Sequence record: OR805293.1 | Direction: 5' to 3' (one strand) | Length of the DNA stretch: 64,000 bases | Part shown: positions 37,716-55,145 of the stretch, piece after piece | How the letters are laid out: every line of letters starts with the position of its first letter | How positions within the stretch are numbered: position 1 is the first letter of the stretch | Position numbers and translations under genes: made by a program | The notes under the pieces: generated by a model | Databases searched by the model: none | What the model was told of the DNA's origin: nothing | The model's input: the letters and a program-made list of their open reading frames with translations, nothing else

Positions 37716-40600
37716 CAAATATATTAGAATTAATGTATGTATGTCACCATACATATAATATAACAACTGACAGCTACTATAACATTTTCTTCTTAAATAA
37801 AAATAATAAAATTATCTTTGTTGTGTATTAAAACAAATGGGAATATTTCTCTTATCACGCAATACTTGTTATATTTGTGTTATACATGTCAGACGCATTG
37901 TATACAAGATTAAAATGTATGACAGACATGGCAATTATGTGTTTACAATTAATGTTATCTAAGAACATATTAAATTATATAGAATTTGGTTGTATGTAAT
38001 ACTGTTTAATAATGGCAACAGATATTGATAAAATAACATACATTTCATTTAACTCATGCTATATATCAGTTAATCGTTTTGGTGTTATTATATATTATGA
38101 GTACGGTAGGTTGATTTTATATGATGATACCCCCGGGATTATATAAGAACGTATTCTACATACAGTATAATGTACGTCATATAAGCATATATTATTTTGA
38201 TGCATGTGAATGTAATATATTACAAGTAGAATGCAATAATTTTCTTACTCTAACATATAAATTAAATGAAAAAACCAATAAGTAATGTGGTTGAATTATC
38301 GTTTAATACGCACTGGTTTAATACCAATTATATAGCTAGTGCTCACTGTTTAATACTTTATAATGCGTCGTCATATCCTATACATTATGTTCGTTTACAC
38401 ACAAACAAGCGTTAACACTTATGTCGCCGGTATCAATTTATAATATAGTTTGTATTCAACACTATCTTAATAGATGGTATACTAGAATATCCACAACAGG
38501 TATTAATGTGTATTCAGATTCATATGTTAGAATTAGAATAAATGTTCATAAATAAAAATATTATAAATTATGATATATTGCAGGTATCTTCATGCGCACA
38601 TATAATAGATTCATCGCTATGTAGCACGTATCTATTAGCATGCATTTATAATAGTAATGAAAAAATTATTATAATTAGTGTTGCATATCTAAGATGAATG
38701 GTATAAAAGATATAATAGAATTTTCATCGCATGCATACGAAATATGTGCCAATACAGCAAGACTTAGAGATATAGTATACTACTCAATACTCATAAAGGC
38801 AAAAGACGGTCTTGCATTTTATATGGTAGACTCGTTTGCATATATAACATGACCAGTATCCTTGAATGTTCTTACAATACTTCTAATATTATGTTTCGTT
38901 TTTGTAAAAACAGTGATATTTTAGTTGTGAACTTTCTAAACAAAAATGATGACATACATTTCATTGTAATAATTAGATACAAATATACATATCGTTAATT
39001 ACTAATACATAAGAGAGTAATAAATGAATAGAGCAGCAAAGAAAAATGTTTCTATATTTGTTATTCAGAATCATACTTTTAGAGTTCATGTTGTACGATA
39101 TGATCCTGCGAGAATTTCAATATATCTCTCACTTGTACATAATTGTGTTGCATCTTAAGAACTATATCTGTATAATGTAGGTTACATTTGCATGTATAGG
39201 ATTATCTTTCATATAATATATGCTTATTAACTATACGACATGTATTGAATTACTTTATAGTATTGTATGATTCGTAAAAATATAGTTCTAATATCACATA
39301 ACACGTCAAAAATAATATTAGAAAGAAGAACAAGCAAAGTATTACGTGTTTCTATATTTAAATCAATCGGAAAATACTACTACCATTATTATACAACGTG
39401 TGGGAAACTATAATGCAAGATCATCATTTCACTACACTGTTGTATATGTCTAATCGTGCAGATAGAATAAAGATTTTCCGACAGCCTTCCTGTCTTATTG
39501 TATATATTAAGTCAGGTATGTTATATATTAATAAACAATTCTTAAAATGTTAGAATATATAGATACTCTCAAATATAATTACATTTTAACTGTATGCAGC
39601 GGTGTAGAGTCTATATCATTTGAATCATTTACTAGATCAGTGATATCAGTTTCCATAATATATAATAATATTACTATCTTTCCGTGCCAAACTACACGAA
39701 CTATACTGTATGGTGTATAATCTTATTTTTATTTCTTTTAATGTTTCTTTAATTAGTTTTTCTATTTTTAATAAAACATTCGAAGTTTATATTTATGGAA
39801 AAATGTTATTGGTAATTTATTATACAGGACTGTATATATGTTAGATATATTGCTACGGTTCCAACGCAGAGTGGATACAATTAAGGTGGAGTTAATATGG
39901 CGTCACTTGCATTTTTATGAAAAAGCCGGCGAGGAGTTAGAGTTATTTCATATTATATTTCTGCCGCCCGATCACCGAAGTATTAATTAACAAAAACAAG
40001 TTGTATTTTTCGGCATAAAAATTTATGAATAAAGATACAAACAAAGAATCACCTATTATTAAAGAATTATATTTTATATTAAGATTGTAAGTAAAATAAA
40101 ATACTTTTAGAATCTAAAACTAAAATGATCGATTGGGTATTTAAATTGTCTGCTAGTTGCTACGAAATAGACGGACAACACAGTGAGTCAATAAGAATAT
40201 ATAATTCATATTGTCTTTTAGGAACTATACAATGTTATTGTGCTCAGTTAAAAATAAATTTATATAAATTTTAATATTGTGGGAAGAATTCTTTTAAATA
40301 GGCATACTATATGAATGATCTATTACACTACCAACTCACATTACGTTCCATATCTTTGCAGAAAGCTCTTTTTAAGTCAGGCAATGTGTATTACATTCTA
40401 ATTGAACGTAACGACAGCGGTAGGTATTCCCGAGATGTAAAAATACTTAAATGATATGCGTATATTTGTAATATCACAAAATTGTATGACTATCAGACTT
40501 TTTTATCATACATATTTCGTTAAAGATGTAAATTATGATTCAATTTGTGTATTATATAAAACGAATAGCAGAATTGTAATACATCCGAGTTTTACAGTAG
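37710..40600 (+). pseudogene. zone of fragmented array paralogs
   Basis: ~2.9 kb with no ORF >=60 aa but with family-like fragments, e.g. MVTNILELMYVCHHT at ~37709 (frameshifted) and MIDWVFKLSASC at ~40125. Confidence 0.6.
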
Positions 40601-40792
40601 ATGAATATATTCGATCTGTCTTATAATTCTTCATTTATTTTGATGAAATCGAATAGAATATACATTAGTGATAATAACAATTATTGTGTGGGAGCTACAT
40701 ATGTATTACCTGCAATAACGAAATATATACATCAAATATTCCATGTAAACGCTGCAATATATAGATTTTTAGATACAAGTATACTAGTATGA
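40601..40792 (+). CDS. short array-like protein
   Basis: ORF track; ATGA-coupled. Confidence 0.45.
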   Translation: MNIFDLSYNSSFILMKSNRIYISDNNNYCVGATYVLPAITKYIHQIFHVNAAIYRFLDTSILV

Positions 40793-40977
40793 AATTCAAT
40801 ATATTTAAATTGCAAAGAAGATGTCACATTATAAATTGTCATTTTTATGACATTCTTAGATTTTCAAAACCTACATATTTTCGAGATGCTGATAGAATAA
40901 CTATATTTTCATTAATAGGTACTAATAGTATCAGAATTTACGAGGATATGTATAAAGGATATGCACAAACCATATGA
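40789..40977 (+). CDS. short array-like protein
   Basis: NIFKLQRRC start. Confidence 0.45.
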   Translation: MKFNIFKLQRRCHIINCHFYDILRFSKPTYFRDADRITIFSLIGTNSIRIYEDMYKGYAQTI

Positions 40978-41258
40978 TTGAAATATTAATATTTTCGAGT
41001 GCTAGTGATTATATTAGTATAAGACATGATATGGCACGGCTATATAATCTTAATGGTGTTAGTGAATTAATATTTGTATCAAAACCATACAAATATATTA
41101 TATTAACTAATTTAAAAAATCATATAGGTATATTCTGTATTTCAAATATAATAAGCAAAAGGGTGATGGGAGATATTACTAGTAACGAATGTTGGGCTTA
41201 TCCTTGGCCTCCAGATACTGGCATAGATGTATATATTAATTTCCTGTATAAAAATTGA
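40974..41258 (+). CDS. array small protein
   Basis: EILIFSSAS ... GIFCISN. Confidence 0.55.
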   Translation: MIEILIFSSASDYISIRHDMARLYNLNGVSELIFVSKPYKYIILTNLKNHIGIFCISNIISKRVMGDITSNECWAYPWPPDTGIDVYINFLYKN

Positions 41259-41289
41259 TGAGCTTTCTACTAAACACACAATATAACCA

Positions 41290-41317
41290 TAGACAAATAA
41301 GTACATTATGCTAATAT
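41290..41317 (+). promoter_or_regulatory. sigma70-like promoter
   Basis: TAGACA-16-TAATAT with extended -10 TG. Confidence 0.65.
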
Positions 41318-41323
41318 ATGCAT

Positions 41324-41740
41324 GCTTACTAAACAGTTACTTGTTAAGTAAGTTAAAAAGTCTGTAACAGTGATGTTACAGGATACACAGGCAAATACGG
41401 TTGGAAGATGCTGTGTAAAGAACAAATATCCAGCTCATTCCTAGGCATTATAGCCTACACAATATACTTGAATGGGCATAAAAACTTCCAAAGAACCTTC
41501 GAAATTTTCTCATAGGATAGTGTATTAGAAGGAATGCACTATCAGGAAGCTGTAGGTGATGGTTGCTATCCCAGACAGTCCTTTCTAAAATACTTTAATA
41601 TGATATAAAGTTCTATGCAACCGTATACATGCTGTAAGATATTAGATTACACCATGTATTAAACGTAAAAGCAAAACCTTCAGTTAGTAATCTCGCAGTG
41701 AAGGGGGTAGGTGAGTGCTACCCAAACTCAACAAACAACT
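41324..41740 (+). ncRNA. candidate structured ncRNA or long 5' leader (ncRNA-1)
   Basis: No ORF >=60 aa; promoter; multiple stems (see findings). Confidence 0.5.
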
Positions 41741-41766
41741 AATGGTCTAGAAAAGGTATAGTATAC

Positions 41767-42174
41767 ATGCAACATACTCACATTCGTTTCTACAACGAAG
41801 AAACTCAACAGATCGATAACCGCCGTGGCGCTACTGTTGCCTGGGAAACCGCCGGCAACAAGATCCGTATTTCCGTAGCAGCATGTTCGGAAATGGATAA
41901 CTTCAACCGCAAGACCGGACGTGAACATGCTGCTAGCCGTCTCGAAAGTGGCGACTACATCGAGTTTAACGGCACCGAACTTCTTAATGCACAGATGTCT
42001 TCTGTAAGTCATGTGCAGTCTGAAGGTCTCGTTCGTGCTATGTGCTTCTTGCTAGCACAAGGCAAAGGCGATCTATATTACCCGGCAAGCGAAGGTCAGC
42101 TTCGCAGCGAAGCCGAGTGCAATAGCTACAACGCTCTCGAGTACCTGAAACACCAGATGGGCATTCATCAGTAA
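41767..42174 (+). CDS. GC-rich hypothetical phage protein
   Basis: AAGGT RBS; motif AACSEMDNFNRKTGR; host-like codons. Confidence 0.85.
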   Translation: MQHTHIRFYNEETQQIDNRRGATVAWETAGNKIRISVAACSEMDNFNRKTGREHAASRLESGDYIEFNGTELLNAQMSSVSHVQSEGLVRAMCFLLAQGKGDLYYPASEGQLRSEAECNSYNALEYLKHQMGIHQ

Positions 42175-42187
42175 GTATTCGGCCATT

Positions 42188-42230
42188 CGGAATTGCGATT
42201 TAGGTTTTGGAATTCTAAATCGCAATTCCG
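42188..42230. terminator. 16-bp perfect hairpin
   Basis: CGGAATTGCGATTTAG-11 nt-CTAAATCGCAATTCCG. Confidence 0.55.
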
Positions 42231-42415
42231 GTTTCCAAATTCAATTTTAGGCACAAACTCGGATCCGCATTTGCATTTTGCATTTACATTTTGTGTTCTG
42301 AGTGTATATGCAAAATGCAATCGCGCATGTTGTCGATGCATTGGCTAATCTTTTATTTTTGATAGTTTAGAAAAGATTAAGAACAGAAACTATCTGTAAA
42401 TTAATAAAAATAACA

Positions 42416-42444
42416 TTTACATTACATACACATATGCATATACT
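42416..42444 (+). promoter_or_regulatory. sigma70-like promoter
   Basis: TTTACA-17-TATACT. Confidence 0.75.
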
Positions 42445-42450
42445 ATATAC

Positions 42451-42728
42451 AAGTTATGCGCTGTTGCATACGTAAATACCTCCTATGTTGTTTAGATATG
42501 TCGATTCTGGTATAACCAGATAGACCTAAGGATGATGCTAGTGATTCCTTAGTATTGTATATTCTAGCTGAGTATAAAGAGTAAGGGGCTTTATACAAAT
42601 AACAATTCCCTAGGCAAGATATACCGCTCCGTTGTGCTGACGAGCATAATTTGCCCAGATACAGAGCACGTGACTGGTCTGAGGAGCATTTATATCAGAA
42701 AGGCAGACTTATGTTTGCCTTTCTTTTT
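42451..42728 (+). ncRNA. candidate ~275-nt structured ncRNA (ncRNA-2)
   Basis: Bounded by promoter and terminator; no credible ORF; several stems and a possible pseudoknot. Confidence 0.65.
42697..42728 (+). terminator. intrinsic terminator
   Basis: AGAAAGGCAGAC-ttat-GTTTGCCTTTCT followed by TTTT. Confidence 0.85.
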
Positions 42729-42742
42729 GAGCAAATATTCTC

Positions 42743-42786
42743 TTATTCATTTCCTTATTCATTTCCTTATTCATTTCCTTATTCAT
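42743..42786 (+). repeat. 12-bp tandem repeat TTATTCATTTCC x3.7
   Basis: Direct reading. Confidence 0.9.
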
Positions 42787-42790
42787 CTCT

Positions 42791-42930
42791 ATTTCATTTG
42801 TTATTGCAAATAAGAATTAGTCTTATTTGCGTTTGTAATTTCATTTGTTATTGCAAATAAGAATTAGTCTTATTTGCGTTTGCAACGAAAAAGAATATGC
42901 AAATAATAACTAATCTTATTTGCATTTGCA
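42791..42930. promoter_or_regulatory. cluster of three palindromic boxes (GCAAATAAGA-N5-TCTTATTTGC)
   Basis: 45-bp perfect direct repeat 42791-42835/42838-42882, third box at 42898-42924. Confidence 0.75.
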
Positions 42931-43095
42931 CTGCCTATTATATGGATTGGTAGCATACTTGGAAATGGATAGTAAATAAGTAGTTGATTTGTTTATAAAT
43001 TTTAATTCTATATCGTACTGATTGACCTTGCTATATATAGCTCGCGCGCGTATACAAGATGGTAAAAAATAATTTAAAAATATTTTAAAAAATGC

Positions 43096-43219
43096 TTGAC
43101 TTTCCATTACTACGACCTTAAAGTGCGAACTGTAGACGCAGTGTGTAGAGCGCTACATAGTAAGCAACGCAGAAAGTAAACAAAAAATGCTTGACGCAAT
43201 GCAAACTAGGCTCTACACT
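43096..43219 (+). promoter_or_regulatory. tandem sigma70 promoters
   Basis: TTGACT-17-TAAAGT (43096-43124) and TTGACG-17-TACACT (43191-43219), both preceded by AAAAAATGC. Confidence 0.75.
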
Positions 43220-43302
43220 GTATACAAGCTTAAGGGGTAAGTGCCCCGAAAGTGTAGTAAGTAAACAACATAATCCTTCCATCAGCTACAGAGGTATACA
43301 AC

Positions 43303-44007
43303 ATGTCCGTACATATCACTCGTCAACGTACCGACAAACAGCACGTCCTGGCACTGGCAATCAACGGCGTGGTCATCGGCCAGACTATGGCTACTTACAC
43401 CACCCCGAGCAAGCGCACCTGGTCGGCGACCGCTGAAGTCGAACTGGCAGACGGCACCGTCGTACAGTTCGAGCAGAAAGAAGTGTTCAGCGCGATCCGC
43501 ATCACCCGCGAAATCGAGCAGGCGCTCGACGGCAAGGAACTGGCGGCCAAGTACACCCCGGAACCGAAAGTTCCCGGGCAGAAGGGTCCGAAACCGCTCA
43601 CCGACGAAAGCCGGCTCAGCAACGCGATCGCGATCGTCAAGGCGGCCATCACCCACACCGGCTTCGACGAAGCTACCCTGGTGTTCGACGGGGTCGACAA
43701 GGCCAACTTCGAGCAGAACAGCACCTCCGTCGGCAACAAGCTGCGTCGCCTGGGCTTCGTCTTCGAACTCGGCGCCGGCAAGGCGAATAGCGGCAAGGGC
43801 TTCCTGATCAACCGCAAAGCGCAGGCCGAGGCAGAAGCTGCCGAACGCAAGGCCAAGCGCGATGCCGAGAAGAAGGAACGCGAAGAAAAAGCGGCGGCTG
43901 CCAAGCGCGAAGCTGACGAACGCAAGGCCAAGCGCGAAGCCGAACGCGCTGAAAAGGTCGCTGAAAAGAACGCAGCGATCGCCGGGGCAGCGCAGGAAAG
44001 CAAGTAA
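43303..44007 (+). CDS. very GC-rich protein with Ala/Lys/Glu/Arg-rich C-terminal tail; paralog of 62563..63018
   Basis: GAGGT RBS; host-like codons; shared NGVV.GQ...VQF.Q..VFSAIRI domain. Confidence 0.9.
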   Translation: MSVHITRQRTDKQHVLALAINGVVIGQTMATYTTPSKRTWSATAEVELADGTVVQFEQKEVFSAIRITREIEQALDGKELAAKYTPEPKVPGQKGPKPLTDESRLSNAIAIVKAAITHTGFDEATLVFDGVDKANFEQNSTSVGNKLRRLGFVFELGAGKANSGKGFLINRKAQAEAEAAERKAKRDAEKKEREEKAAAAKREADERKAKREAERAEKVAEKNAAIAGAAQESK

Positions 44008-44022
44008 TTGCCCAACTGCGCC

Positions 44023-44052
44023 GAAAGGGGAGCAAATTGCTCCCCTTTCTTC
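44023..44052 (+). terminator. intrinsic terminator
   Basis: GAAAGGGGAGCA-aat-TGCTCCCCTTTC. Confidence 0.85.
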
Positions 44053-44620
44053 ATGACCATATAATCTATATACTACTGTGTCTTTAACTATATTTTCTAT
44101 ATCAGCTAGTTTGTATGCAATAACTTGGTATTCTATGCCAGCGACACAATGCTGTTATATAGACATAATAACACGCGACGCTGATATTTTTATAACCTAT
44201 CCATTTTATAATAACATACTTGTATCTAAAATTATTTCTAATACAATACCTGTAGGAAGTTATGAACACTATATTAGAGATATGTCGTGGAATAAGAAAT
44301 GATCATATAACAGTCAATAATTTTACATATGACTACTATCTAGAGGTAAACACACCTGTGTTTTCTTTAATGATAATTATTCCAACAGTTCCTATATTAG
44401 ACAATACTTGCATTACTTTTATAAAAAAGTATTAATATGAATATATTCTTTATATCAAACAGTCTATCTAATATACTATATCATAAAGCTTATGATATAC
44501 ATATGATAGATATTAATATTAATAATTCTACTTCTATTTGGCTTACATATTCTTTCAATATTGCTAAGGTATCATTTAAATATATTATCTAATTCATTTT
44601 CTTATTGTATGAATTGTAAT

Positions 44621-44689
44621 TGCAAATTACTCTTATTTGTAATTGCATATAAACAATCAGTTGCTATTAAAAGTATTTGCTGTTAATAT
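44621..44689 (+). promoter_or_regulatory. palindromic box plus sigma70 promoter
   Basis: TGCAAATTACTCTTATTTG, then TTGCTA-17-TAATAT (44661-44689). Confidence 0.6.
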
Positions 44690-44973
44690 ATTATATAACA
44701 GTGCAATTGATATTTTAAAATACAGTGTGCAATACATCTTACATGTATTAAAATTTGTGTGTTACTTATTTTGCATTAATGATTAATATACCTCTCATAC
44801 AGTACAAAACTCATACTATAAACAATTTGTTCGGGCGATCGTTCTCAAAATGTATACAAGTGCGAGATGACAATCTAATTTTACTTGTTAGTTTTTATAT
44901 AGAAGGTTCTAAATATAGAAAATTTGTATATAACAACCAATGCCTTGCCAATGCCTTGAAGGGATTTTAGTAT

Positions 44974-45240
44974 ATGCAAACAACAATCGTTAATGCCCTA
45001 AAATCTATTAATGTAAAGTATTCGGATATATTTTACACAAATGGTAATTTGTGTAATACCGTTACAATACGAAATATTCGCAAAAATGGTAAATTAGATT
45101 CGGCAGAACAAATCAATGTAGAATCAGTTGTGAGCAATTATTTGATTCAAAAAGATTTAAATTTGCCCTTTTCTATTCAGTGGGCAAATAATGATTGTTG
45201 CGAAGAGTATACTACACTTATTCTCTTCTTCAGAAAATAG
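44974..45240 (+). CDS. hypothetical protein
   Basis: ORF track. Confidence 0.65.
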   Translation: MQTTIVNALKSINVKYSDIFYTNGNLCNTVTIRNIRKNGKLDSAEQINVESVVSNYLIQKDLNLPFSIQWANNDCCEEYTTLILFFRK

Positions 45241-45413
45241 TGTATGATTAGATTAAAAAGATATGTTCAATTGCATAGCATATACAGATTGTCTTACTAT
45301 GCGCACAACATACATTTTAGCAAAACAAAGAAGATAATGCTTTACGTAGGAAACGCAGGTCCCGTACCCGTAACATGACAGTATATAGCGTTAAAATGTG
45401 CATTTTTTGCACG

Positions 45414-45533
45414 ATTTTGCGGGGTATGCGTTACAAGCAATACACACATACTGCTTTTAAAATGCATGCTTACATGCGCTTTGTAGGGGGTTTAAAACAT
45501 GCTTAAATTAGTTACCACTGTGCTATACAACGT
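45414..45533. other. GA/TC-free tract
   Basis: 120 nt with no GA and no TC. Confidence 0.8.
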
Positions 45534-45711
45534 CTGTGTAGCTTCGTTGATAATGATTGTGTTTGTATGTGGTATAAATTTAGTAATGTATATAGATAAC
45601 AATACTGCCAATAATCCAGTTGTTATCTTTATTTCCCTTCTATCGGTTATTTGGGGTGTTGCGCGGTTAAGCTATATGTTTGTTACTATCCAATTTCAGT
45701 CCAAGAAATAA
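45499..45711 (+). CDS. small membrane protein
   Basis: AGGGGG RBS; two TM segments. Confidence 0.65.
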   Translation: MLKLVTTVLYNVCVASLIMIVFVCGINLVMYIDNNTANNPVVIFISLLSVIWGVARLSYMFVTIQFQSKK

Positions 45712-45726
45712 AAGTATTGGTAACAT

Positions 45727-46068
45727 ATGATAGATAAAAATGGAAATACAGAAGACTTTGATTTTGATAATGCATGCACTATAACTGATCTGTCTGTTCC
45801 TCTTCAGCAAAAAATACAATCATATAAATTAAATAAAATATTGGTTATGGTTGCAATCCTTAAATATTCGAATATAAAACAAGAAATTGGATGTTTCGCT
45901 ATCATATGGGATCATATAATAAAAATAACTGTTGAAGTAAAATGCAATCCGTATGCAGAAACACACATACTCATGCATGCGCATGTATTTTCTAATTCCG
46001 ATTCATGTACTCATAGTGTATTGCTGAATTACAGAAACAAATATTTACCCACTAATTATTATAATTAA
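45727..46068 (+). CDS. hypothetical protein
   Basis: ORF track. Confidence 0.55.
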   Translation: MIDKNGNTEDFDFDNACTITDLSVPLQQKIQSYKLNKILVMVAILKYSNIKQEIGCFAIIWDHIIKITVEVKCNPYAETHILMHAHVFSNSDSCTHSVLLNYRNKYLPTNYYN

Positions 46069-46069
46069 T

Positions 46070-46474
46070 ATGGAAGATATTCTTAAAATTGCCAAACTAA
46101 TCGGGTACGTAAACATACATGCAAATAAACATTTTCAGTATGGTTTTAACAAAGATATGGAACATGTATGTGTTAGTGCTAAGAGTAGGACAAGTATAAA
46201 GGGAATAAAATACCTTTATGTAGTAATGAATATATATTATATATATTGCCAGCAAGAAAGTGTTGCTGTTATATTAAACGAAGTAAACACTGATGAAATG
46301 CCTGTATTAGACAATCTTTATGCTAAGCTCAATGATTTAGTTACACATAAATCTGTTATAAAATTTAAATATACAGAAATAACACAAGAACAAATAGATT
46401 TGTTGAATAATAGTGAAAGATATATAGTATATTTTGACTCTAATTTAGAATACGGAATAGCTTCGTTTTATTAA
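46070..46474 (+). CDS. hypothetical protein
   Basis: ORF track. Confidence 0.65.
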   Translation: MEDILKIAKLIGYVNIHANKHFQYGFNKDMEHVCVSAKSRTSIKGIKYLYVVMNIYYIYCQQESVAVILNEVNTDEMPVLDNLYAKLNDLVTHKSVIKFKYTEITQEQIDLLNNSERYIVYFDSNLEYGIASFY

Positions 46475-46487
46475 TTTTGAGGAATAT

Positions 46488-46685
46488 ATGAAAAAACAAA
46501 CAGGATTTACAGATTGGCCATTGATTAGTTTGGGTACAATTATTATCTTGTGTGTATGGGTACTAATTCTACAATACACAGAAATAAATGTACTAGAAGA
46601 AAAATGTAACAAAGTAGGTGGTATTTTTAATAACACCGTTTGCATACGGTCAGATGCAGTTATTAATTTAGATAAGGTAAAATAA
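46488..46685 (+). CDS. small membrane-anchored protein
   Basis: GAGG RBS; one TM segment. Confidence 0.7.
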   Translation: MKKQTGFTDWPLISLGTIIILCVWVLILQYTEINVLEEKCNKVGGIFNNTVCIRSDAVINLDKVK

Positions 46686-46686
46686 A

Positions 46687-46944
46687 ATGCCAAAACTTTA
46701 CGTTAACAAAAAACATGATACCATTTATCTTCAATTAGATCATTTCTCATCTAATACTGTATCTCCAATTAATTATAACGAAGATGTAGAATATGTAATT
46801 GATAGGATCCGTAGTCTGCATAAATCCGGCTTCGGATTTAGTCATATGAATACTCTGCAAGAATATCTTACGGCAAGAACAGAACAGGATAAGAAGTTTA
46901 AGCTTAAAGTAGAAGACTTCGAAGTAGTATCATTTAAGATTTAA
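46687..46944 (+). CDS. hypothetical protein
   Basis: AAGGT RBS. Confidence 0.75.
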   Translation: MPKLYVNKKHDTIYLQLDHFSSNTVSPINYNEDVEYVIDRIRSLHKSGFGFSHMNTLQEYLTARTEQDKKFKLKVEDFEVVSFKI

Positions 46945-46965
46945 AATTATACATAATCAAAGTAT

Positions 46966-46994
46966 TTGACATTTGATGTGTATACTAGTATAAT
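46966..46994 (+). promoter_or_regulatory. consensus sigma70 promoter
   Basis: TTGACA-17-TATAAT. Confidence 0.9.
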
Positions 46995-47000
46995 TTGCTC

Positions 47001-47625
47001 ATGCTGTCGTAACAGCTACTTTGTTCCATTCACAAGCAGCTCTGTTCCATTATTGGATATTGGTAGTAGAAACTATCCCCATCGTGCCCACAGTATTGTT
47101 CTGTTAGAGACAGGTTAAAGCATACAAAAGTGGGTTATTTAAATTATGATTTTGGGTGCTGAAGTATAGTCGTTAGACAAGGATATGTCTAATGTTGCAA
47201 AGGACTATGCGAAACGTATTATATATCTTATCCGATATTAGATATGTAATAAAAGGATGAAGCTCTGGTAGAAACAGAGTGTAATTCTTGCTTGTATTTC
47301 GCACGAATATACAAAAGAATATACACACCAACTTCAGCATTGATGTAAATTTTCTAGCATAGGTATATAACATCGATGTTCCGGGATTCATTGGAAACAA
47401 TGAGAGAATGATGTAATCTGAGGAAAAAGGTCCCCGCCTCGTCCATATTACGAAATGGTTTTGAGTACTTATGCCCTCGTCCTATATTGGCATATGGGTT
47501 TTATATTTCTCCCGTAATTACGGGAGAATATAATTTCCTGAACCTACTTGGAAATGGACGCTTCTGATGTGCTTCGCACATCATCTAAGGGCCTTCACCC
47601 TTACCGCTAAGAGCAAGAGCAAAAG
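47001..47625 (+). ncRNA. candidate ~600-nt highly structured ncRNA (ncRNA-3)
   Basis: Consensus promoter; no + strand ORF >=60 aa; nested multibranch stems (see findings). Confidence 0.7.
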
Positions 47626-47860
47626 CAATATAATTACAAATAAGAATTAATTATTGTTTAGTTTTATCGTAATGAATATGAAGATAAAAACTAAACAATA
47701 ATTCACATGTAGCGTTAGCTACTGTGAATATCTACTATAGTATTAACCATATATGTATACAAGGGCATAATATGACTATTACTTGTTGACAATATGATAT
47801 GTGTGTTACACTGCATAAATCAAATGTACATTACAATGTTTTGATTATTAGGAACATACT

Positions 47861-48445
47861 ATGTCATTTTCTTTGACTGCTGCTATTAATCGATACACTA
47901 GTCTAATAGAAGAAAATTTCAAAATAAATTATCTGAGGCAGTTTGAGTCAGGATATATCTCGTATAAATTACTAAGAAATAAAGCACTCCTGCATACCGA
48001 AATATCACATGGACTTGATTACATAAAGGTAATTATTTCTTATACATATGTAGAAAATAATGTCGAATTAGATATCAAATCATCTATTGTACATTCGTAT
48101 ATTTCTACTACTGATTGCTCTAAATTTAAAGTAGGAGATATAAAAACGTTTTACGATTCAGTTCCTCGTGGAAATGTTTTTAATATTAAAGAGAATACTC
48201 AAGTTAGCTGGTCAACAGCTAATATTGGAATTTACGAGAATCCGTTTAATCTTAATTATATCTCGAACAATAAGTATATTCGATTAGAAACAGGAGACAT
48301 ATTTGTCTATATTAATGATAGTATGGTAAATGAACTACAAGAACATATGCATGTTCATTCTATATGTACTAACAAAACAAAGAAGTTTTATGTAAGAGAA
48401 ATTGATTTGAATATGCTACATTACAAAAAACACATTATGGAATAA
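47861..48445 (+). CDS. hypothetical protein
   Basis: AGGA RBS; 194 aa. Confidence 0.75.
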   Translation: MSFSLTAAINRYTSLIEENFKINYLRQFESGYISYKLLRNKALLHTEISHGLDYIKVIISYTYVENNVELDIKSSIVHSYISTTDCSKFKVGDIKTFYDSVPRGNVFNIKENTQVSWSTANIGIYENPFNLNYISNNKYIRLETGDIFVYINDSMVNELQEHMHVHSICTNKTKKFYVREIDLNMLHYKKHIME

Positions 48446-48448
48446 AGA

Positions 48449-48997
48449 ATGAACTACAAAGCATTAGAAGTATTTTATTTCTTTCTAGAACATTACAAGG
48501 TAAATCCAGTAGCCGATTTGGAATTTAAATTCGAACCCTCGGGTAGTGATGATCAATCTAAGCGCAAGTCATCACTGTCGTTTGTTAAACGCATTGGTGT
48601 TCTTACTCCTTCATTTAACGAATTATACGAAGTTCAGAATCGATTCATGACAGATCTTCGAGAAATGAATGTAGTATATAAGATAGGATTTAATTATAAT
48701 GCATTCAACGTATTAGCACCTTTGTATGCAAGATATGAAAAGAATGTAAAAGAATTTCGTCGACTTTTAAAGAAATACTCAAATTTCAACGAAGTAACAG
48801 AATATTACAAAAAAGCCAACAACATGTTACCGGACAATGTATACGAAACAATGAAGGAAGATTTTTCATTGTTTAACGACGTTACTACAAAGAGGTTATC
48901 TGAAATAAAACTTTGTTATCCTAATTGGCAAGTATGGGATTCTGAACATCCCAACTGGGAAACAATAAATCAACTTTATAAGAATGCAAAGAAATAA
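48449..48997 (+). CDS. hypothetical protein
   Basis: 182 aa. Confidence 0.8.
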   Translation: MNYKALEVFYFFLEHYKVNPVADLEFKFEPSGSDDQSKRKSSLSFVKRIGVLTPSFNELYEVQNRFMTDLREMNVVYKIGFNYNAFNVLAPLYARYEKNVKEFRRLLKKYSNFNEVTEYYKKANNMLPDNVYETMKEDFSLFNDVTTKRLSEIKLCYPNWQVWDSEHPNWETINQLYKNAKK

Positions 48998-49006
48998 TGC
49001 ATATTT

Positions 49007-49117
49007 AGAAAGGGAATTATAATTCCCTTTCTTTTTGGATCTATATTAGCAAATGCTAATTAATCTTATTTGCACAAATTTAATCCTATTGTGTTTTCTA
49101 TTTTGAAGTGCTACATT
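49007..49117 (+). promoter_or_regulatory. terminator + palindromic box + promoter module
   Basis: Hairpin 49007-49036; box 49049-49075; TTGTGT-17-TACATT (49089-49117) with TG. Confidence 0.65.
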
Positions 49118-49155
49118 ACATGTAGTTGCATAAAACTATATACAGGAGAAATGAT

Positions 49156-49704
49156 ATGTGGGATATCAAAGAAGGGGATGATATCGAAGTCGAAGCAGTT
49201 ATGGATGAACGAAGCTATGAGTGGACCGGCAAGTTACGTATCATTCAGTATCGGACCCTTCAATCAGCTCAGTGGCGTGTTATTATCAATATAGTAGAAT
49301 TTTGGAGTCATTCTACTGAAAGTATACTGAACGAACTTGGTATAGAAGCTAAACACATCACTAAAGGATATGCTACACTTAGTATGGTTCGTTTCCCGGA
49401 TGTTGATTACCTATTTAGTGTAACACCCGATAATGCAGATTATGTAACTGTTAACCACAGTGCAGTAGATATTTCTGACAGTTGGTTTGTTGCAAAAAAC
49501 ATAAAAGCAGTTATGTATCATTTGGGATCTGAAATTCAGCTCACTCCGTGGTTTGTGCGTAAAGATAGTAGTGAGTCAAATTTCAATTGTATTGATCGAT
49601 TAGTAGCTCTAGTGAAAGAGAATACTGATGTTGACACGTATCAGTACATTAAAGTAGGTTGTCCTGAGGACAAGTCATTTTACTTTGCGTGGATAGACAA
49701 ATAA
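49156..49704 (+). CDS. hypothetical protein
   Basis: AGGAG RBS, ATG 49156. Confidence 0.75.
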   Translation: MWDIKEGDDIEVEAVMDERSYEWTGKLRIIQYRTLQSAQWRVIINIVEFWSHSTESILNELGIEAKHITKGYATLSMVRFPDVDYLFSVTPDNADYVTVNHSAVDISDSWFVAKNIKAVMYHLGSEIQLTPWFVRKDSSESNFNCIDRLVALVKENTDVDTYQYIKVGCPEDKSFYFAWIDK

Positions 49705-49830
49705 TTCGTTTGCTATACGTACTAATACGTTGTATACTGTTAGTACGTATAGTAGAAGTAACATATAACGTTTTGAGTTAAGGGAACCATAACATAAAAA
49801 AGAATTTGAATTGAGGTGCCCTACGAGTAG

Positions 49831-50325
49831 GTGTTCGAGATGGAGCAAATAGTGAATATGCGAGAAGTGACATTTCTTTCCGCAGTGGATGCCAGCAAGA
49901 TCGAGACGCCGAGCAACGTCATCAGCATCGGCAGCAAGGGTGATTGGTATGCCTTTGCCTGCGATCACAAGCGCGTTCTGCGGCTGGAGTTTGATGACGT
50001 AGACGGATACGTGGGAAGCGATGGCTTTCGAGTGTTCAGCCACATTGACGCCAAGCAGATCCACGACTTCGTGAACGAGTGTGGTGATGAACCGATCATT
50101 GTTCACTGCCAAGCAGGCATGAGCCGATCCGCTGCGGTTGCCAAGTTCCTAGCTGACAAGCGCGGCTACACCTTGAACCTGTCGAAGCCTTGCTTAGGCA
50201 CTACACAATTCTACAACCGCCACGTCTACGGAACGTTGAACCTCAACAACGCCGAAAGCATGAGCGCCTATTACGCAGAGATGGAGCTAGCCGACCGGAC
50301 GCGTGGCCATCCAAAGGAGTCCTGA
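49831..50325 (+). CDS. protein-tyrosine/dual-specificity phosphatase-like protein
   Basis: Active-site CX5R motif IIVHCQAGMSRSAAVA; upstream LEFDD acid loop. Confidence 0.88.
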   Translation: MFEMEQIVNMREVTFLSAVDASKIETPSNVISIGSKGDWYAFACDHKRVLRLEFDDVDGYVGSDGFRVFSHIDAKQIHDFVNECGDEPIIVHCQAGMSRSAAVAKFLADKRGYTLNLSKPCLGTTQFYNRHVYGTLNLNNAESMSAYYAEMELADRTRGHPKES

Positions 50326-50327
50326 TC

Positions 50328-50627
50328 ATGCCTGACATGAGAGAAGAGTTTGAAGCCGCAATCTTTGCGGAAGTGAATGAACAGCGGGCTGCTGAAGGTG
50401 AATTTGTCCTTCAGCATCCAGAAGGGCTATTTGCCCGCGATGACGATGGCTCCTACTTGATCCGTTGGGTCAAGAGCGCATGGTGGGCCTGGCAAGCCAG
50501 CCGCGCAGCTCTGAGAGTGGAGTTGCCGAAACCTCACCCTGCATTTGAGTACGCACCTAGAGCCAAGGTTTTCAATATAACTGACGTTGAGGTAGCCCTC
50601 CAGCAAGCCGGAATCGAGGTGAAGTGA
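50328..50627 (+). CDS. hypothetical protein, temperate-phage-like
   Basis: AAGGAG RBS, ATG 50328; MREEFEA...AWWAWQASRAAL pattern. Confidence 0.75.
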   Translation: MPDMREEFEAAIFAEVNEQRAAEGEFVLQHPEGLFARDDDGSYLIRWVKSAWWAWQASRAALRVELPKPHPAFEYAPRAKVFNITDVEVALQQAGIEVK

Positions 50628-50774
50628 ATGAGAACGCCCATCTTCATCGGCGGATCAATTGGCATAGGAATCGCCTATCTGATGAATCCTGAATATCCCG
50701 CTATCGCGCTTGCAATGGTGTTTAGCGCGGGTACCTCATTGTTCATTCACTATCTATCTGAGGTATGGCCATGA
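50628..50774 (+). CDS. small membrane protein (48 aa, not in ORF track)
   Basis: GAGGT RBS; coupled at both ends; two hydrophobic segments. Confidence 0.55.
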   Translation: MRTPIFIGGSIGIGIAYLMNPEYPAIALAMVFSAGTSLFIHYLSEVWP

Positions 50775-50845
50775 CCGACCACGCAGAGCTGCGGAGGCTG
50801 GCTAAAGAAGTGATCCGAATTGAACGAAATGAGGATGCAGCATGA
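50771..50845 (+). pseudogene. 24-aa Ead/Ea22-like N-terminal remnant
   Basis: MTDHAELRRLAKEV...; ATGA-coupled on both sides. Confidence 0.45.
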
Positions 50846-51378
50846 GCATTGACTGGACCAAGGCACCAGAGGGTGCGACGCACTACCAACCGGAATCACG
50901 CGGCTTCCATGCGGCATGGTTCCGACTTCAAGGGGGGAAGGCTCGCGAAATGTGGGTCGTGAGACCCAGCCGCGCGCTTGAGCACATCATCGATCCGACT
51001 GTCTTCGACGAGAGCATGCAGAACCTGATCGCCCGCCCCGTAGAACCTGCCACCTGGAACGGCCAGGGCCTGCCGCCGGTTGGCCTGATGGTGGAGTGGA
51101 AGGCAGGCCTTGATCACGACTGGCAGCGCGTAACCGTGCTTGCCTACGCCAATGGCGACGCGTGGTTTCAGCCCGAGGATGGCCCGTCTTTCATCGTCGG
51201 CAACCCGGCAAACTTCAGGCGTATCCGCACCCCCGAGCAGTTGGCCGCCGAGGAGCGGGAAAAGGCGATTAATCAGATGATTTCTGATGCTGGATACGTA
51301 GATCCGAAGATTGGCACATTTGTGGCTATGCGCAATCTCTACGACGCCGGCTACCGGCGCCGGGAGGAAGGGAAATGA
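50842..51378 (+). CDS. hypothetical phage protein
   Basis: MSIDWTKAPEGATHY; W.G.GLPPVG; LYDAGYR patterns. Confidence 0.8.
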   Translation: MSIDWTKAPEGATHYQPESRGFHAAWFRLQGGKAREMWVVRPSRALEHIIDPTVFDESMQNLIARPVEPATWNGQGLPPVGLMVEWKAGLDHDWQRVTVLAYANGDAWFQPEDGPSFIVGNPANFRRIRTPEQLAAEEREKAINQMISDAGYVDPKIGTFVAMRNLYDAGYRRREEGK

Positions 51379-51641
51379 GCAGACTGACAGCTGAGCAATC
51401 CCGTGACATAGCGCGAGCGAAAGACGATGTCGATACTATCCTCAACGACATCGCCAAATCAGCCGCAGAAGGAAAGTACGTGTACACTACCCGCGCCTAT
51501 GGGTTCGGCACAGGCGGCGGACGGCGCAGCGACGCGATCCTCAAAGTGTTGCGTAGCCTCGGCTACGACTGTGCGGTGCATGCTGAGGGACGCCAGTCTG
51601 TTGACCTGTGGCTTGAAGTGAAATGGGGAGACAAGCCATGA
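51375..51641 (+). CDS. hypothetical protein
   Basis: ATGA-coupled; GGAAGG RBS. Confidence 0.75.
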   Translation: MSRLTAEQSRDIARAKDDVDTILNDIAKSAAEGKYVYTTRAYGFGTGGGRRSDAILKVLRSLGYDCAVHAEGRQSVDLWLEVKWGDKP

Positions 51642-52057
51642 CTAACAACCCCGGAGATTCAAAAATGATCGTAGAAAACGCCAAGCAAGCTGCCGAAGAC
51701 TTCAAAACTTCCATGGCTAAGATTTTTCCGAATTACATCGCCAGGGCGTCGGTTTCCGATAACCTTGGTCCGGCGATGACAATTTCGTTTGCGAATGTCG
51801 GTTGCGCTTCCGAAGCCCCGAACAGCATTCTGATAAATGCGAGCGGTTACATGCGCTTTATGATGCATTTGTGTGACAATTGCGGGAATGTATTGCCAGA
51901 AGGTTCGCCGGTAGAAATTGAGCTGCTAATGTGGTCTATCCCCTGTCGTTCGGAAGTAATCAAGTTCCGCAAGATCAAGGGCAAGACACCAGCCGAAGCT
52001 ATGCAAAAGCTAGTCAAGTGGTTTGAAAAAAACGCCGAAGCTATCCGGGGTCTGTAA
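51638..52057 (+). CDS. hypothetical protein
   Basis: GGAG RBS, ATG 51638. Confidence 0.75.
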   Translation: MTNNPGDSKMIVENAKQAAEDFKTSMAKIFPNYIARASVSDNLGPAMTISFANVGCASEAPNSILINASGYMRFMMHLCDNCGNVLPEGSPVEIELLMWSIPCRSEVIKFRKIKGKTPAEAMQKLVKWFEKNAEAIRGL

Positions 52058-52081
52058 TGGTCTCCACGTAGGACACGCAGA

Positions 52082-52483
52082 ATGAACATTGTGTTGGACA
52101 AATTGCTGTTTGGCGGTTTCATCGACCAGCAGCGCAATGAACTTGCCCAGCAACAACTGAATCGGTTGTTTGCCAAGTACGGTGAGCCGAAGATTGGTAT
52201 CACACGGGCATGCTTTCTATCTAAGCATTACGTCCTGAAGTTCCCGATTAATGACAGGGGTGAGCGGTGCAACGATTGGGAAGGTAGCTGTTCCGGCAGC
52301 TACTTGGCACGCGGACGCTGGCTAGAAATCGGAGGCTTCATTTGTGTCATGCAAGAGCGTTTGGTTGAAGTGGATTGGAAGAACAACACCCATGCAAACT
52401 TTCCTGATTGGGTAGGCAGCATAGATTGTGGTCAAGTCGGCTACGATAAACATGGCGTTCTGAAAGCGTATGACTTCGGGTGA
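52082..52483 (+). CDS. compact protein-kinase-like protein
   Basis: GITRACF, YVLKFP (catalytic Lys), N.WE, MQERL, DCGQVG, terminal YDFG. Confidence 0.5.
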   Translation: MNIVLDKLLFGGFIDQQRNELAQQQLNRLFAKYGEPKIGITRACFLSKHYVLKFPINDRGERCNDWEGSCSGSYLARGRWLEIGGFICVMQERLVEVDWKNNTHANFPDWVGSIDCGQVGYDKHGVLKAYDFG

Positions 52484-52486
52484 AGC

Positions 52487-52678
52487 ATGACCATCAATTT
52501 GTTTGTCGTCAACATAAAGAACGAACCTATCCCAACCGACCACAAGTCGATACTCCGCTATCTTGGCCTTAGCCTGCACACGCAAGGCCGTCGTGTATCT
52601 GCCAAATTCAGCAGCGGTAAGTTGAAGCTGAACAACTACAACATCGAATTTTTTCACATGGCGGAGATGATTCCATGA
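52487..52678 (+). CDS. hypothetical protein
   Basis: ORF track; coupled to next gene. Confidence 0.65.
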   Translation: MTINLFVVNIKNEPIPTDHKSILRYLGLSLHTQGRRVSAKFSSGKLKLNNYNIEFFHMAEMIP

Positions 52679-53211
52679 CCGACACCAACAAAATAAAAAA
52701 GCTAGCAAAACTGGACGAGATCGACAGGCTCAGGGCAGAGCGAGACGCCGCCCTGGCCAGGGTCGTAGAGCTGGAACGCGGCAAGGTCTACGTCGAAGCC
52801 CGGCAATGCGACGAGTGCCAGCATGTCGGGATCAACGATTCCGCCACGGTCGTGGCTGCCTGCCACGAATGCGATTGGACCGGACCAGAGCCAGAAGAGG
52901 ATAAGTGCCCCGGTTGCCAGAGGGAGAATTGCATGGCCGCAGCCTGCCCGCAGTGTGGCGCCCGATATGTCCTTGTTGCCAGCGAAGAGATAGCCGCCCC
53001 TGTAGCCCAGGCTCAGCACAGCGTGCCAGAGGAATGGCACTGCATGCTAGCGAATCTTCAGTGGCACTACGAGCCGTATGACGATCACTACCACCGTGAC
53101 CAGGGCTTCTATTGCCCGGTCTGTGGCGGTGAGAAGGACGAAGGGCACAAGCAGGGTTGCAACCTGGCCAAGTTGATCGCCACTGCCGACCTCAAAGAAG
53201 ACAAGAAATAA
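52675..53211 (+). CDS. chimeric Ead/Ea22-like protein with Cys-rich zinc-binding repeats
   Basis: MTDTNK, DEIDRLRAERDAALARV, several CxxC motifs. Confidence 0.7.
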   Translation: MTDTNKIKKLAKLDEIDRLRAERDAALARVVELERGKVYVEARQCDECQHVGINDSATVVAACHECDWTGPEPEEDKCPGCQRENCMAAACPQCGARYVLVASEEIAAPVAQAQHSVPEEWHCMLANLQWHYEPYDDHYHRDQGFYCPVCGGEKDEGHKQGCNLAKLIATADLKEDKK

Positions 53212-53237
53212 AATTCTAAATTACTCGAACAAACATA

Positions 53238-53483
53238 ATGGGAGCAGCATACATGAGCCTCAAATATAACGGATATGTCTTTAACATCGGTATCCTTGGC
53301 CAAAACGAAGCTATCAGTGAATACGCCTATCCCACCGATGATCCCGAAAGTGATAAAAAGAAAGCTTTTTTGACTGCAATGGCAAAATTCGTCGAATCAG
53401 ATGATTTCGAGAAATTTACTAATCAAATGTATAACAATTTCTCGATTAATGTTCAAGCACTAGTTTCTACGTCTACAGAGTAA
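53238..53483 (+). CDS. hypothetical protein
   Basis: GGAG RBS before internal ATG. Confidence 0.65.
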   Translation: MGAAYMSLKYNGYVFNIGILGQNEAISEYAYPTDDPESDKKKAFLTAMAKFVESDDFEKFTNQMYNNFSINVQALVSTSTE

Positions 53484-53676
53484 ATTATCAGTATTGATGC
53501 TGATATAGACTATTACAGCTTCTTGTATCAGCATCAATACTGCAAAAAATAAAGAATAATTAATTCCAGTTCTTTGTTCCTGTATTAAGTGACAATAAAG
53601 AAGGCATAACTACTTTGTCTTTGATGCTAAGTAGTAATTATCTTATGATAACTACAAGAATATCAACGAAAAATAA

Positions 53677-53853
53677 ATGAACATCTTAAAACATATATAT
53701 TGGGCTGTGCGTTATGGTGATTGGAATATAGGATGGGATCCGACCTGGGGTAGCAAACCCAATGAACCTTTTATTTGGTGTAAGCCGATATATTATGACG
53801 GACATCATTGCTACCTGCGAGTAGGCTACTTTTGGATAGGAGTAACATACTAA
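53677..53853 (+). CDS. small Trp/Tyr-rich protein (58 aa, not in ORF track)
   Basis: MNILKHIYWAVRYGDWNIGWDPTWG... Confidence 0.55.
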   Translation: MNILKHIYWAVRYGDWNIGWDPTWGSKPNEPFIWCKPIYYDGHHCYLRVGYFWIGVTY

Positions 53854-54094
53854 CATTTGCAATATATCTATAAAAGAATATATTAGTAACACAGTTGTTA
53901 AATTGCAAACACTAATTAATCTTATTTGCATTTGCTATCTTGTATAATAGAAACGACTTCTAAACATGGATATGAGATGGAAAATTTAGATAGGATCTCT
54001 GTTACAAATTTTTGAGTTACAATACATAGTAGTTTTGCTATTATGTGTTTATAGAAGTTTAATAACAGAACTAAAACATAAAGGATTGTCTGTC

Positions 54095-54436
54095 ATGAAA
54101 AGTTACGCAAAGTTTTATGTAGGAACAAACATATATGATGCTGAAGTGCCGGATTTAGACATAAACATGCCAGATGCAGAACTTTTCGAAGTAGCATTGC
54201 ATCAAATGGCAGTACAGTGGTCTAGCACTGCCGGGCATCCGCATCACAAGGATGCAATGCGTAAAGACGGCAAGGTAGCCCGGAGTAAAGAACGGGTGTA
54301 TATTCGCGGCAACGGCTGGTCCATTTCGTTGCATAGTCCCGAATTTGTAGAAAAACATTCGGCATACATTGCCGCAGCGGAGTGGAAACTACTAACAGAT
54401 TTGCTTGTGTTTGACACCTGCTGGAACGCTAATTAG
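54095..54436 (+). CDS. hypothetical protein
   Basis: AAGGA RBS, ATG 54095. Confidence 0.75.
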   Translation: MKSYAKFYVGTNIYDAEVPDLDINMPDAELFEVALHQMAVQWSSTAGHPHHKDAMRKDGKVARSKERVYIRGNGWSISLHSPEFVEKHSAYIAAAEWKLLTDLLVFDTCWNAN

Positions 54437-54463
54437 TAATTCTCTTTATACAGGAGAACAGTA

Positions 54464-54796: not shown

Positions 54797-54798
54797 GA

Positions 54799-55138: not shown

Positions 55139-55145
55139 GAAGTAA

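Follow-up and report, generated by a model that had tools for sequence, protein, structure and literature searches.

Three paralogous loci of Wroclawvirus jumbo phages form a family of large structured non-coding RNAs with a common four-way junction core

ROOL and GOLLD are large phage-borne RNAs that form RNA-only multimers. The put RNA of phage HK022, a cis-acting antiterminator, is about 70 nucleotides (nt) long, with two stem-loops directly downstream of early promoters. The element described here is a non-coding RNA (ncRNA) locus starting at position 46,966 of a 64,000-nt stretch of sequence record OR805293.1 (Pseudomonas phage Deifobo); this stretch is called the window, and positions refer to it unless stated otherwise. 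The locus, termed copy C, resembles ROOL and GOLLD in size range, carriage by a phage and its many hairpins, but it belongs to a set of three diverged copies per genome (A, B and C) in phages of one genus infecting a Gram-negative host. Like put, it is a structured RNA directly downstream of an early promoter, but it forms a unit of 740-1200 nt, and in the case of copy A the RNA is discrete. ColE1 RNA II and the T4 origin transcripts offer a further likeness, with a strong promoter driving a non-coding transcript of several hundred nt into AT-rich DNA and, as in T4, several loci per genome; in contrast to them, no antisense partner is evident here, and early transcription in PA5oct is reported to come nearly entirely from the Watson strand (PMC7318152).

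The interval 46900-47900 is 100% identical to Deifobo (OR805293.1, 170900-171900; Deifobo position minus 124000 gives the window position), a Wroclawvirus and PA5oct-like jumbo phage, and the same region is 97.8-98.9% identical in nine other sequenced Wroclawvirus phages (PA5oct, MIJ3, Paride, Ettore, Cassandra, Callisto, PAC2, phi30-2 and phi30-3). The locus occupies a gene-free gap of about 0.9 kb between the end of gp49 (46944) and the start of gp50 (47861), and its PA5oct counterpart lies at about 12.8-13.7 kb in the gp49/gp50 interval of the 39-kb terminal repeat. According to Lood et al. (2020; PMC7318152), the terminal-repeat genes gp34-gp105 of PA5oct show high early transcription by host RNA polymerase, nearly all from the Watson strand, and copy C falls inside this early block.

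Copy C is an unannotated member of an undescribed RNA family whose sole annotated member is PA5oct ncRNA004 (EST35_0353, MK797984 246116-246734, recorded as 'putative lncRNA; Annotation based on RNA-Seq data'). Logan contigs from four sequencing runs break at a shared block, two ending at 47088 and 47081 and two starting at 47059; the breaks at 47059 and 47088 suggested a repeat of at least 31 nt and led to the paralogues. The Deifobo genome, rebuilt from five pieces and the window, was searched for the shared blocks, yielding copies A and B (Table 1), with collinear shared blocks at Deifobo 117333-117590 and 235491-235861, respectively. Block 1 differs among the copies only in the H2 loop (47051 and 47053), block 2 comprises the unpaired UAUUUAAAUU with the 3' strands of P4 and P1, and the hairpin loop of block 3 repeats the GUAGAAAC of H3, while the stretches separating the blocks cannot be aligned. 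Over 619 nt, PA5oct ncRNA004 and copy A agree at 99.2% of positions; against copy C, blastn aligns ncRNA004 over 128 nt at 80.5% identity (E = 3.7e-28), and blocks 1, 2 and 3 follow one another in unchanged order at 93-100% identity.

The sigma-70-type promoters lie directly upstream on the + strand in each case, with TTGACA-17-TATAAT for copies B and C and TTGACA-17-TAAACT for copy A. All three copies occur in 11 of 11 Wroclawvirus records (identity 98.9-100% for A and B, 97.8-100% with copy C as query), and a covariance model of the core, built from these sequences, recognises three loci and no more in each genome, with scores of 138-174 bits against 19 bits for the next best match. Copies A, B and C make up a family of large structured ncRNAs, about 0.6-1.2 kb in size, that all Wroclawvirus phages carry, and we hold it very likely that copy C is a functional structured RNA of this ncRNA004-like family. 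ncRNA004 and copy C share blocks 1-3, the four-way junction, hairpin order, the TTGACA-17 promoter, the + strand and a similar length. ncRNA004 differs in having RNA-seq support and a defined 3' end, with the remaining sequence unalignable, and copy C in its early terminal-repeat position, perfect -10 box and (ARN)7 tract. A literature search on jumbo phages, non-coding RNA and covariation returned no match to such a family, and the available sections of the PA5oct paper mention neither paralogues nor a fold for ncRNA004 (PMC7318152).

The comparison of the copies shows in all of them a predicted, almost invariant four-way junction of about 125 nt with covarying outer stems. Single-sequence minimum free energy (MFE) folding gives the same four-way topology independently for copies A, B and C, and the minus strand of the core reaches only -19.8 kcal/mol, compared with -30.4 on the + strand, with the architecture lost. 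RNAalifold returns 40 pairs, 10 of them with compensatory changes. When the alignment is fitted to the model, pairing holds in 99% of its cells and 11 pairs change on both sides, against 5.0 ± 1.6 in shuffles (0 of 500 reaching 11) and 0-3 when the partners are slid by 1-3 columns. Covariation resides in P1, P5 and the inner stems, H2, H3 and P4 being invariant; P5, for example, reads CCCAC/GUGGG in copy C, UGUUAA/UUAACA in copy A and CCUUU/AAAGG in copy B. Phage phi30-3 carries a private double change in copy C, converting C47089-G47132 to U-A at a distance of 43 nt.

Variation within copy C was assessed across 13 genomes, comprising the ten isolates and three metagenome contigs found via the gp49 protein. 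The body of the copy (47001-47716) varies in 17 of 716 columns (2.4%), while the seven flanking genes vary at 12.2% of third (103/843) and 3.9% of second codon positions, and adjacent non-coding DNA varies at about 11% (6/56 just upstream, 16/144 in 47717-47860). Copy C evolves as slowly as the second codon positions of its neighbours and is under strong purifying selection. Sorted against the structure predicted from Deifobo alone, the variable columns comprise eight unpaired positions, five pair-keeping changes (the phi30-3 double change among them), position 47298, the T47506 deletion and the pair 47567/47581. On the minus strand the same changes break pairs, as with C.A in 12 of the 13 genomes, and several A-U/G-U alternations become C.A mismatches if read on that strand.

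The preliminary description of this DNA, made from the letters alone, had placed a structured RNA of about 600 nt behind a perfect promoter and ended it at 47625. The promoter is present as described, being the sole 12/12 consensus match in the 19 kb scanned (40000-59000), and both hexamers are unchanged in 10 genomes while spacer and flanks vary. Low variation begins at the predicted transcription start, with 46997 and 46998 variable and 47001-47030 invariant, and the RNA-seq 5' end of copy A lies 13 nt downstream of its equivalent predicted start. The non-coding unit also stands, with a different end: the first variable site after 47581 is 47740, and constraint extends from A47001 to about 47739. 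The structural picture given at that time missed the most conserved part, 47035-47162. A promoter-like site of gp50's own occurs at 47786-47812, inside the variable stretch.

Downstream of the core, element order is retained with diverged stems, running from the AAGGA hairpin through block 3, the GAGG...CCCGCCUC motif, the GC hairpin and the long AT hairpin to the closing hairpin. The three variants of the bulged hairpin are compatible with its fold: 47298 U>A can pair with U47308, 47301 lies in the loop, and 47306 A>G yields U.G or C-G. The GC-rich hairpin is matched in copies A and B by collinear CCC/GGG-tipped hairpins with other stems, and the RNA-seq 3' end of copy A falls about 20 nt past its terminator-like GC hairpin. 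In copy C, deletion of T47506 in four genomes removes the bulge of this hairpin; its U-rich tail is weak, conservation continues 200 nt beyond it, and the hairpins further 3' are without U tracts. The 8-bp hairpin carries the pair 47567/47581 as A-U in a single genome, as C-G in eight others and as C.U in the remaining four. Its loop alleles (47573-47575) are TTC, GAA, AAA and TTT, two sets of reverse complements, a pattern that template switching at the inverted repeat would produce by inverting the loop. The (ARN)7 tract, a possible Hfq distal-face site, occurs in copy C alone among the three copies; the + strand of the 288-kb genome has only 7 runs of at least seven such triplets. Copies A and B each have a collinear counterpart of the long AT-rich hairpin, and the stems of these counterparts covary around a common 32-nt apex.

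Table 1. Positions of features of copy C, of its two paralogues and of a motif recurring in the window
Feature	Position	Strand	Basis or remark
Sigma-70 promoter, TTGACA-17 nt-TATAAT	TTGACA 46966-46971, TATAAT 46989-46994	+	Sequence match
Predicted transcription start A, 7 nt past -10 box	47001	+	Inferred from promoter geometry
Conserved non-coding unit, copy C	47001-47739	+	Low variation; PA5oct (MK797984) 12866-13605
5'-terminal hairpin GCUGU-CGUA-ACAGC	47003-47016	+	Invariant, 13 genomes
Block 1	47035-47088	+	100% over 49 nt vs copy A; 96% over 54 nt vs copy B
Conserved 5' core, four-way junction	47036-47162	+	Common MFE topology, three paralogues
P1	47037-47040/47158-47161	+	
H2	47046-47057	+	
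H3	47062-47077	+	
P4, long arm	47078-47085/47146-47156	+	
P5, long arm	47086-47091/47130-47135	+	
Apical hairpin of long arm	47100-47114	+	
Block 2	47133-47161	+	26-29 nt, 100% in all three copies
AAGGA-loop hairpin	47171-47194	+	Collinear in copies A and B: other stems, same AAGGA loop core
12-bp hairpin, one U.G pair	47217-47251	+	Sole variant, 47238, in loop
Block 3, AAAGGAUG then hairpin CUCUG-GUAGAAA-CAGAG	47252-47280	+	91-93% identity, copies A and B
Hairpin in block 3	47262-47280	+	Recurs with changed stem in paralogues
Bulged hairpin	47292-47314	+	Three variants fit fold
6-bp hairpin, GAAA tetraloop	47388-47403	+	Inside 158-nt stretch without variation, 13 genomes
GAGG...CCCGCCUC motif	47420-47440	+	Similar motifs at collinear place, copies A and B
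GC-rich 14-bp hairpin, U-rich tail, terminator-like	47501-47533	+	Terminator scan
8-bp hairpin, hypervariable 3-nt loop	47565-47583	+	Compensatory change
6-bp hairpin UAAGGG-CCUUCA-CCCUUA	47586-47603	+	Invariant
Seven consecutive A-R-N triplets, predicted unpaired	47609-47629	+	Copy C only
Long AT-rich hairpin, 17-bp perfect arms (about 20 bp in total), no U tract	47649-47703	+	Free energy -17 kcal/mol, z = -5.2
Terminal 12-bp hairpin	47701-47729	+	Collinear closing hairpins in copies A and B
Copy A	Deifobo 117281-118035	+	Shared collinear blocks; PA5oct (MK797984) 246100-246860
Copy B	Deifobo 235335-236530	+	Shared collinear blocks; PA5oct (MK797984) 75832-77027
Motif CAAATAAGAATTA/TTAATCTTATTTG	42807-42912, 44627, 47637, 49060, 53916, 57155, 59718, 62103-62211, 63083, 63667		

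The helices of the preliminary description are all found where it had placed them and are exactly complementary, except TATTATATATCT/AGATATGTAATA, which contains one U.G pair. By our own estimate, chance yields about 1.7 perfect 9-mer inverted repeats in 700 nt of this composition, so that the long-range helices are not significant alone. The enclosing long-range helix of that description (47157-47165/47331-47339) is complementary as described, but it takes the P1 bases 47158-47161, competing with a covariation-supported stem, and has no counterpart in copy A; it probably lies outside the native fold. Local hairpins exceed chance, the long AT-rich hairpin by its z-score, the AAGGA-loop, block 3 and GC-rich hairpins by recurrence, and the 8-bp hairpin by compensatory change. 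The broader reading as a large structured ncRNA is borne out by a + strand RNA unit with its own promoter, constrained sequence and a covariation-supported core.

Comparison with Rfam 15 at the gathering score and up to E = 10 returned nothing credible for the window, the locus, the core alone or both paralogues. The matches obtained were at chance level (RT-14 at 23 bits against a cut-off of 48, and microRNA and small nucleolar RNA models), with none for the core alone. No Rfam 15 model of 6S RNA, tmRNA, RNase P, group I or II introns, riboswitches, T-box, pRNA or self-cleaving ribozymes matched, neither ROOL (RF03087) nor GOLLD (RF01998) matched any copy up to E = 10, and ARAGORN reported no tRNA or tmRNA at the locus. 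The earlier statement that the RNA cannot be assigned to any class no longer holds in one respect, copy C being a paralogue of PA5oct ncRNA004.

Scaffold, sponge and ribozyme had been suggested as functions, all three of them conjectural. Like RsmY/RsmZ, copy C presents candidate RsmA-like sites, the conserved AAGGA loop and AAAGGAUG of block 3 resembling them. GGA motifs, however, number 10 in 740 nt against 8.7 ± 2.5 in shuffles (P = 0.37), 2-4 of them predicted unpaired, a density at chance level that does not support a CsrA/RsmA sponge of the RsmY/RsmZ type. The A-R-N tract recalls the Hfq/Crc-binding CrcZ, from which copy C differs in that the tract is confined to it among the three copies and no Rfam match is found.

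Several observations weigh against the preferred reading of copy C as a functional member of this family and a putative binding platform. The PA5oct record, curated with RNA-seq, annotates ncRNA001, ncRNA002 and ncRNA004 and leaves 12810-13720, the copy C interval, empty; one of the three copies, copy A, is a detected transcript, and none is recorded for copy C. The earlier inference of an abundant RNA thus finds no support, and even ncRNA004 accounts for only 0.02-0.08% of PA5oct phage reads (PMC7318152). Unlike ncRNA001 and ncRNA002, copy C has no canonical terminator before gp50 and may read through into that gene. The core covariation derives from three independent lineages only, in an alignment partly fitted to the model, and the 100% identity over 49 nt could reflect gene conversion instead of function. 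No paralogous protein genes flank the three copies, and no shared neighbour points to a partner.

Folding energy likewise counts on this side, being unremarkable for the Deifobo genome. For the 710-nt RNA the predicted folding energy is -193 kcal/mol, and comparison with dinucleotide shuffles gives z = -6.25, or -5.6 for the minus strand; in a GC-corrected scan of the whole window 47001-47650 reaches only z = -1.1, the best interval being 47126-47775 (rank 1 of 195, z = -2.45); with so weak a corrected score, folding energy alone proves little. Two other intervals of the window, 59151-60126 and 34776-35750, also fold well beyond the GC prediction, with residual z of about -2.1 to -2.45, much as the present locus does.

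A further point on this side is that no homologue was found outside Wroclawvirus in IMG/VR, JGI metagenomes, GTDB genomes, GenBank phages or, through neighbour genes, 5.8 billion proteins; in that protein set the flanking proteins gp50 and Deiofobo_0153 have near-identical relatives only. Individual matches from these searches were set aside. The IMG/VR search (flanking protein, four exact motifs and one gapped motif) gave a sole match, on a contig of 69% GC, attributed to chance, and the JGI search with a 20-mer gave one match inside a radical-SAM-like gene on a contig of 61% GC, also judged chance. With a 20-mer in GTDB, a Lentisphaeria metagenome-assembled genome (CAIKZE010000271.1, 3866-3888) showed 23 nt exactly matching block 2, without block 1 and without a covariance-model match, and is probably a chance hit as well.

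As to function, a trans-acting binding platform is our tentative proposal, which we place somewhat short of an even chance; family membership and such a platform, taken in combination, stand at about even. In this scheme, host sigma-70 RNA polymerase would synthesize the RNA early, and the 5'-terminal hairpin would protect its 5' end. Leaky termination at the GC-rich hairpin may generate the 3' end, or alternatively cleavage at the long AT-rich hairpin, acting as a putative RNase III site. The invariant junction, the repeated GUAGAAAC loops and the unpaired UAUUUAAAUU would constitute a platform for one phage or host protein or complex, with the RNA serving as scaffold or decoy, while the diverged bodies may confer copy-specific timing or extra partners; the (ARN)7 tract, copy C's own feature, could bind Hfq.

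Alternatively, each copy might mark a replication origin, its transcript forming an R-loop or primer in AT-rich DNA as ColE1 RNA II or the T4 oriE, oriF and oriG transcripts do, with the core recruiting or positioning the replication machinery. The presence of three dispersed copies is what a cis-acting element would lead one to expect, and copies A and B coincide exactly with points where the coding strand changes from minus to plus. In every copy AT-rich DNA follows the terminal long AT-rich hairpin, extending for about 750 nt with direct repeats after copy A; copy C, however, is off any strand switch and has only about 120 nt of AT-rich DNA behind it. T4-like replication genes in the phage and an RNase H-like protein reported in the PA5oct paper (PMC7318152) accord with an origin, as does the low steady-state level of ncRNA004, which fits a primer. 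On the other hand, GC skew just tracks gene strand and gives no independent signal, and no iterons are common to the three loci. The T4 oriF and oriG transcripts are not known to require a conserved RNA fold. We regard an origin role as unlikely, although it is the least unlikely of the alternatives. Ranking next, and likewise improbable, is a cis-acting leader, in which the RNA forms the 5' part of a downstream mRNA (gp50 onward for copy C) and acts by processive antitermination as put does, by attenuating transcription at the GC hairpin, or through a junction that senses a ligand or protein. Each copy does lie directly behind a promoter and upstream of + strand genes, with a terminator-like GC hairpin at a kept position, the core shows riboswitch-like conservation in its invariant junction and covarying stems, and the lack of a canonical terminator before gp50 would suit a leader. 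Yet PA5oct copy A is a discrete 619-nt RNA with the next + strand gene about 1 kb on, copy B is followed by a single 150-aa gene, the genes downstream of the three copies are unrelated, and gp50 has its promoter-like site; the distance of 350-800 nt from core to GC hairpin is also long for an expression platform.

The conservation could also act at the DNA level, through recombination, packaging or protein-binding sites, or belong to a mobile repeat homogenised by gene conversion, the transcript being incidental. Completely identical blocks beside unalignable sequence, loop alleles (TTC/GAA, AAA/TTT) resembling DNA template switching and the plentiful homing endonucleases of the genome are in keeping with such an element. 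It is nonetheless very unlikely in our judgement: compensatory changes keep a one-strand fold, with G-U/A-U swaps that neither the opposite strand nor duplex DNA could accommodate as pairs, each copy has a correctly oriented promoter, one copy is a detected RNA, and the H2-loop variant of PA5oct copy C was not copied into its copy A, which indicates no concerted evolution at that site. Least credible of all is that the region encodes one or more small proteins, as annotated in Deifobo, Paride and PAC2. Automatic annotation does call open reading frames (ORFs) of 30-55 aa here, and two tiny coding sequences are annotated inside copy B in PA5oct, but the calls differ among genomes, GenBank records and strands, and metagenome gene callers report nothing at the locus. 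The earlier observation that no + strand ORF of at least 60 aa exists holds between 46944 and 47861, the sole + strand ORF in the gap being a 50-aa frame whose TTG start lies within the -35 box. The small ORFs have no Pfam or PHROG match, a 1-nt indel segregates within copy C, and the conserved blocks keep no common frame across the paralogues, the ATG in block 2 opening 7, 14 and 50 codons in the three copies. A non-coding locus is supported.

Two further ncRNAs of PA5oct have counterparts in the window, ncRNA001 at 42471-42706 (99% identical) and ncRNA002 at 56658-57112 (92%). Like copy C they are non-coding, in the early region, on the same strand and behind sigma-70-type promoters, which are near-consensus and lie at 42416-42444 and 56611-56639; unlike copy C they end in canonical GC-stem/U-run terminators and give no sign of a shared fold. 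In sequence they are unrelated to the present family, the common sequence being limited to short words such as an 11-mer shared with the ncRNA002 terminator. Both are abundant in PA5oct, at 1-5% of phage reads (PMC7318152). The 2018 PA5oct preprint counts five ncRNAs, the fifth of which may be copy C or B. For ncRNA003 the GenBank record gives MK797984 103065-103668 (604 nt, overlapping coding sequence EST35_0169) and Table 1 of the paper 103065-103368 (PMC7318152), so that one of the two is misprinted.

Other features of the surroundings were also recorded. The gene 3' of copy C, gp50 (47861-48445), is unusually variable, with changes in 89 of 582 columns in ten phages (39, 18 and 32 at codon positions 1, 2 and 3), a pattern that indicates weak or diversifying selection; gp50 has no Pfam match. 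A motif, CAAATAAGAATTA or in complement TTAATCTTATTTG, is present at 26 sites where 10.4 would be expected, most of them in early intergenic DNA; 3' of ncRNA001 it forms tandem hairpins GCAAATAAGA-ATTAG-TCTTATTTGC, and it may be a terminator, operator or repeat element. In PA5oct the early terminal repeat has only one unannotated gap larger than that of copy C, about 980 nt long (MK797984 29139-30120, corresponding to about the last 200 nt of the window and beyond). The AT-rich stretch 3' of copy A (Deifobo 118035-118780) contains the direct repeat TCATTTTGTGATTTTAATTTAAA twice and doubtful tiny ORFs only, and could be an origin or promoter cluster. GC content rises to 52-56% at 43000-43999 and 50000-52999, compared with 33% for the genome, which suggests horizontally acquired genes. 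Twelve tRNA genes cluster at 14757-18953, matching the count of 12 given for PA5oct (PMC7318152).

Paride and its relatives, including Deifobo, are the sole phages reported to replicate in deep-dormant Pseudomonas aeruginosa (PMC10761892). On a more speculative note, and improbable as it stands, more so than either an origin or a leader role, the three RNAs might be subunits of a new phage ribonucleoprotein or RNA-only assembly, whose invariant junction would engage a central host machine (RNA polymerase, the ribosome, the degradosome or Hfq) in taking over the cell and could aid Paride-type replication in dormant cells.

PA5oct-like phages are candidates for phage therapy, and most of their genes are without known function. 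The present analysis turns an empty 0.9-kb gap into a defined gene tied to an RNA already present in RNA-seq data, and at least five GenBank records contain spurious small-ORF calls that it corrects. The three loci of each genome encode RNAs of a single family whose core is supported by covariation and absent from Rfam, where the family would form a new entry. It adds to ROOL, GOLLD and the small number of other large RNAs from phages.

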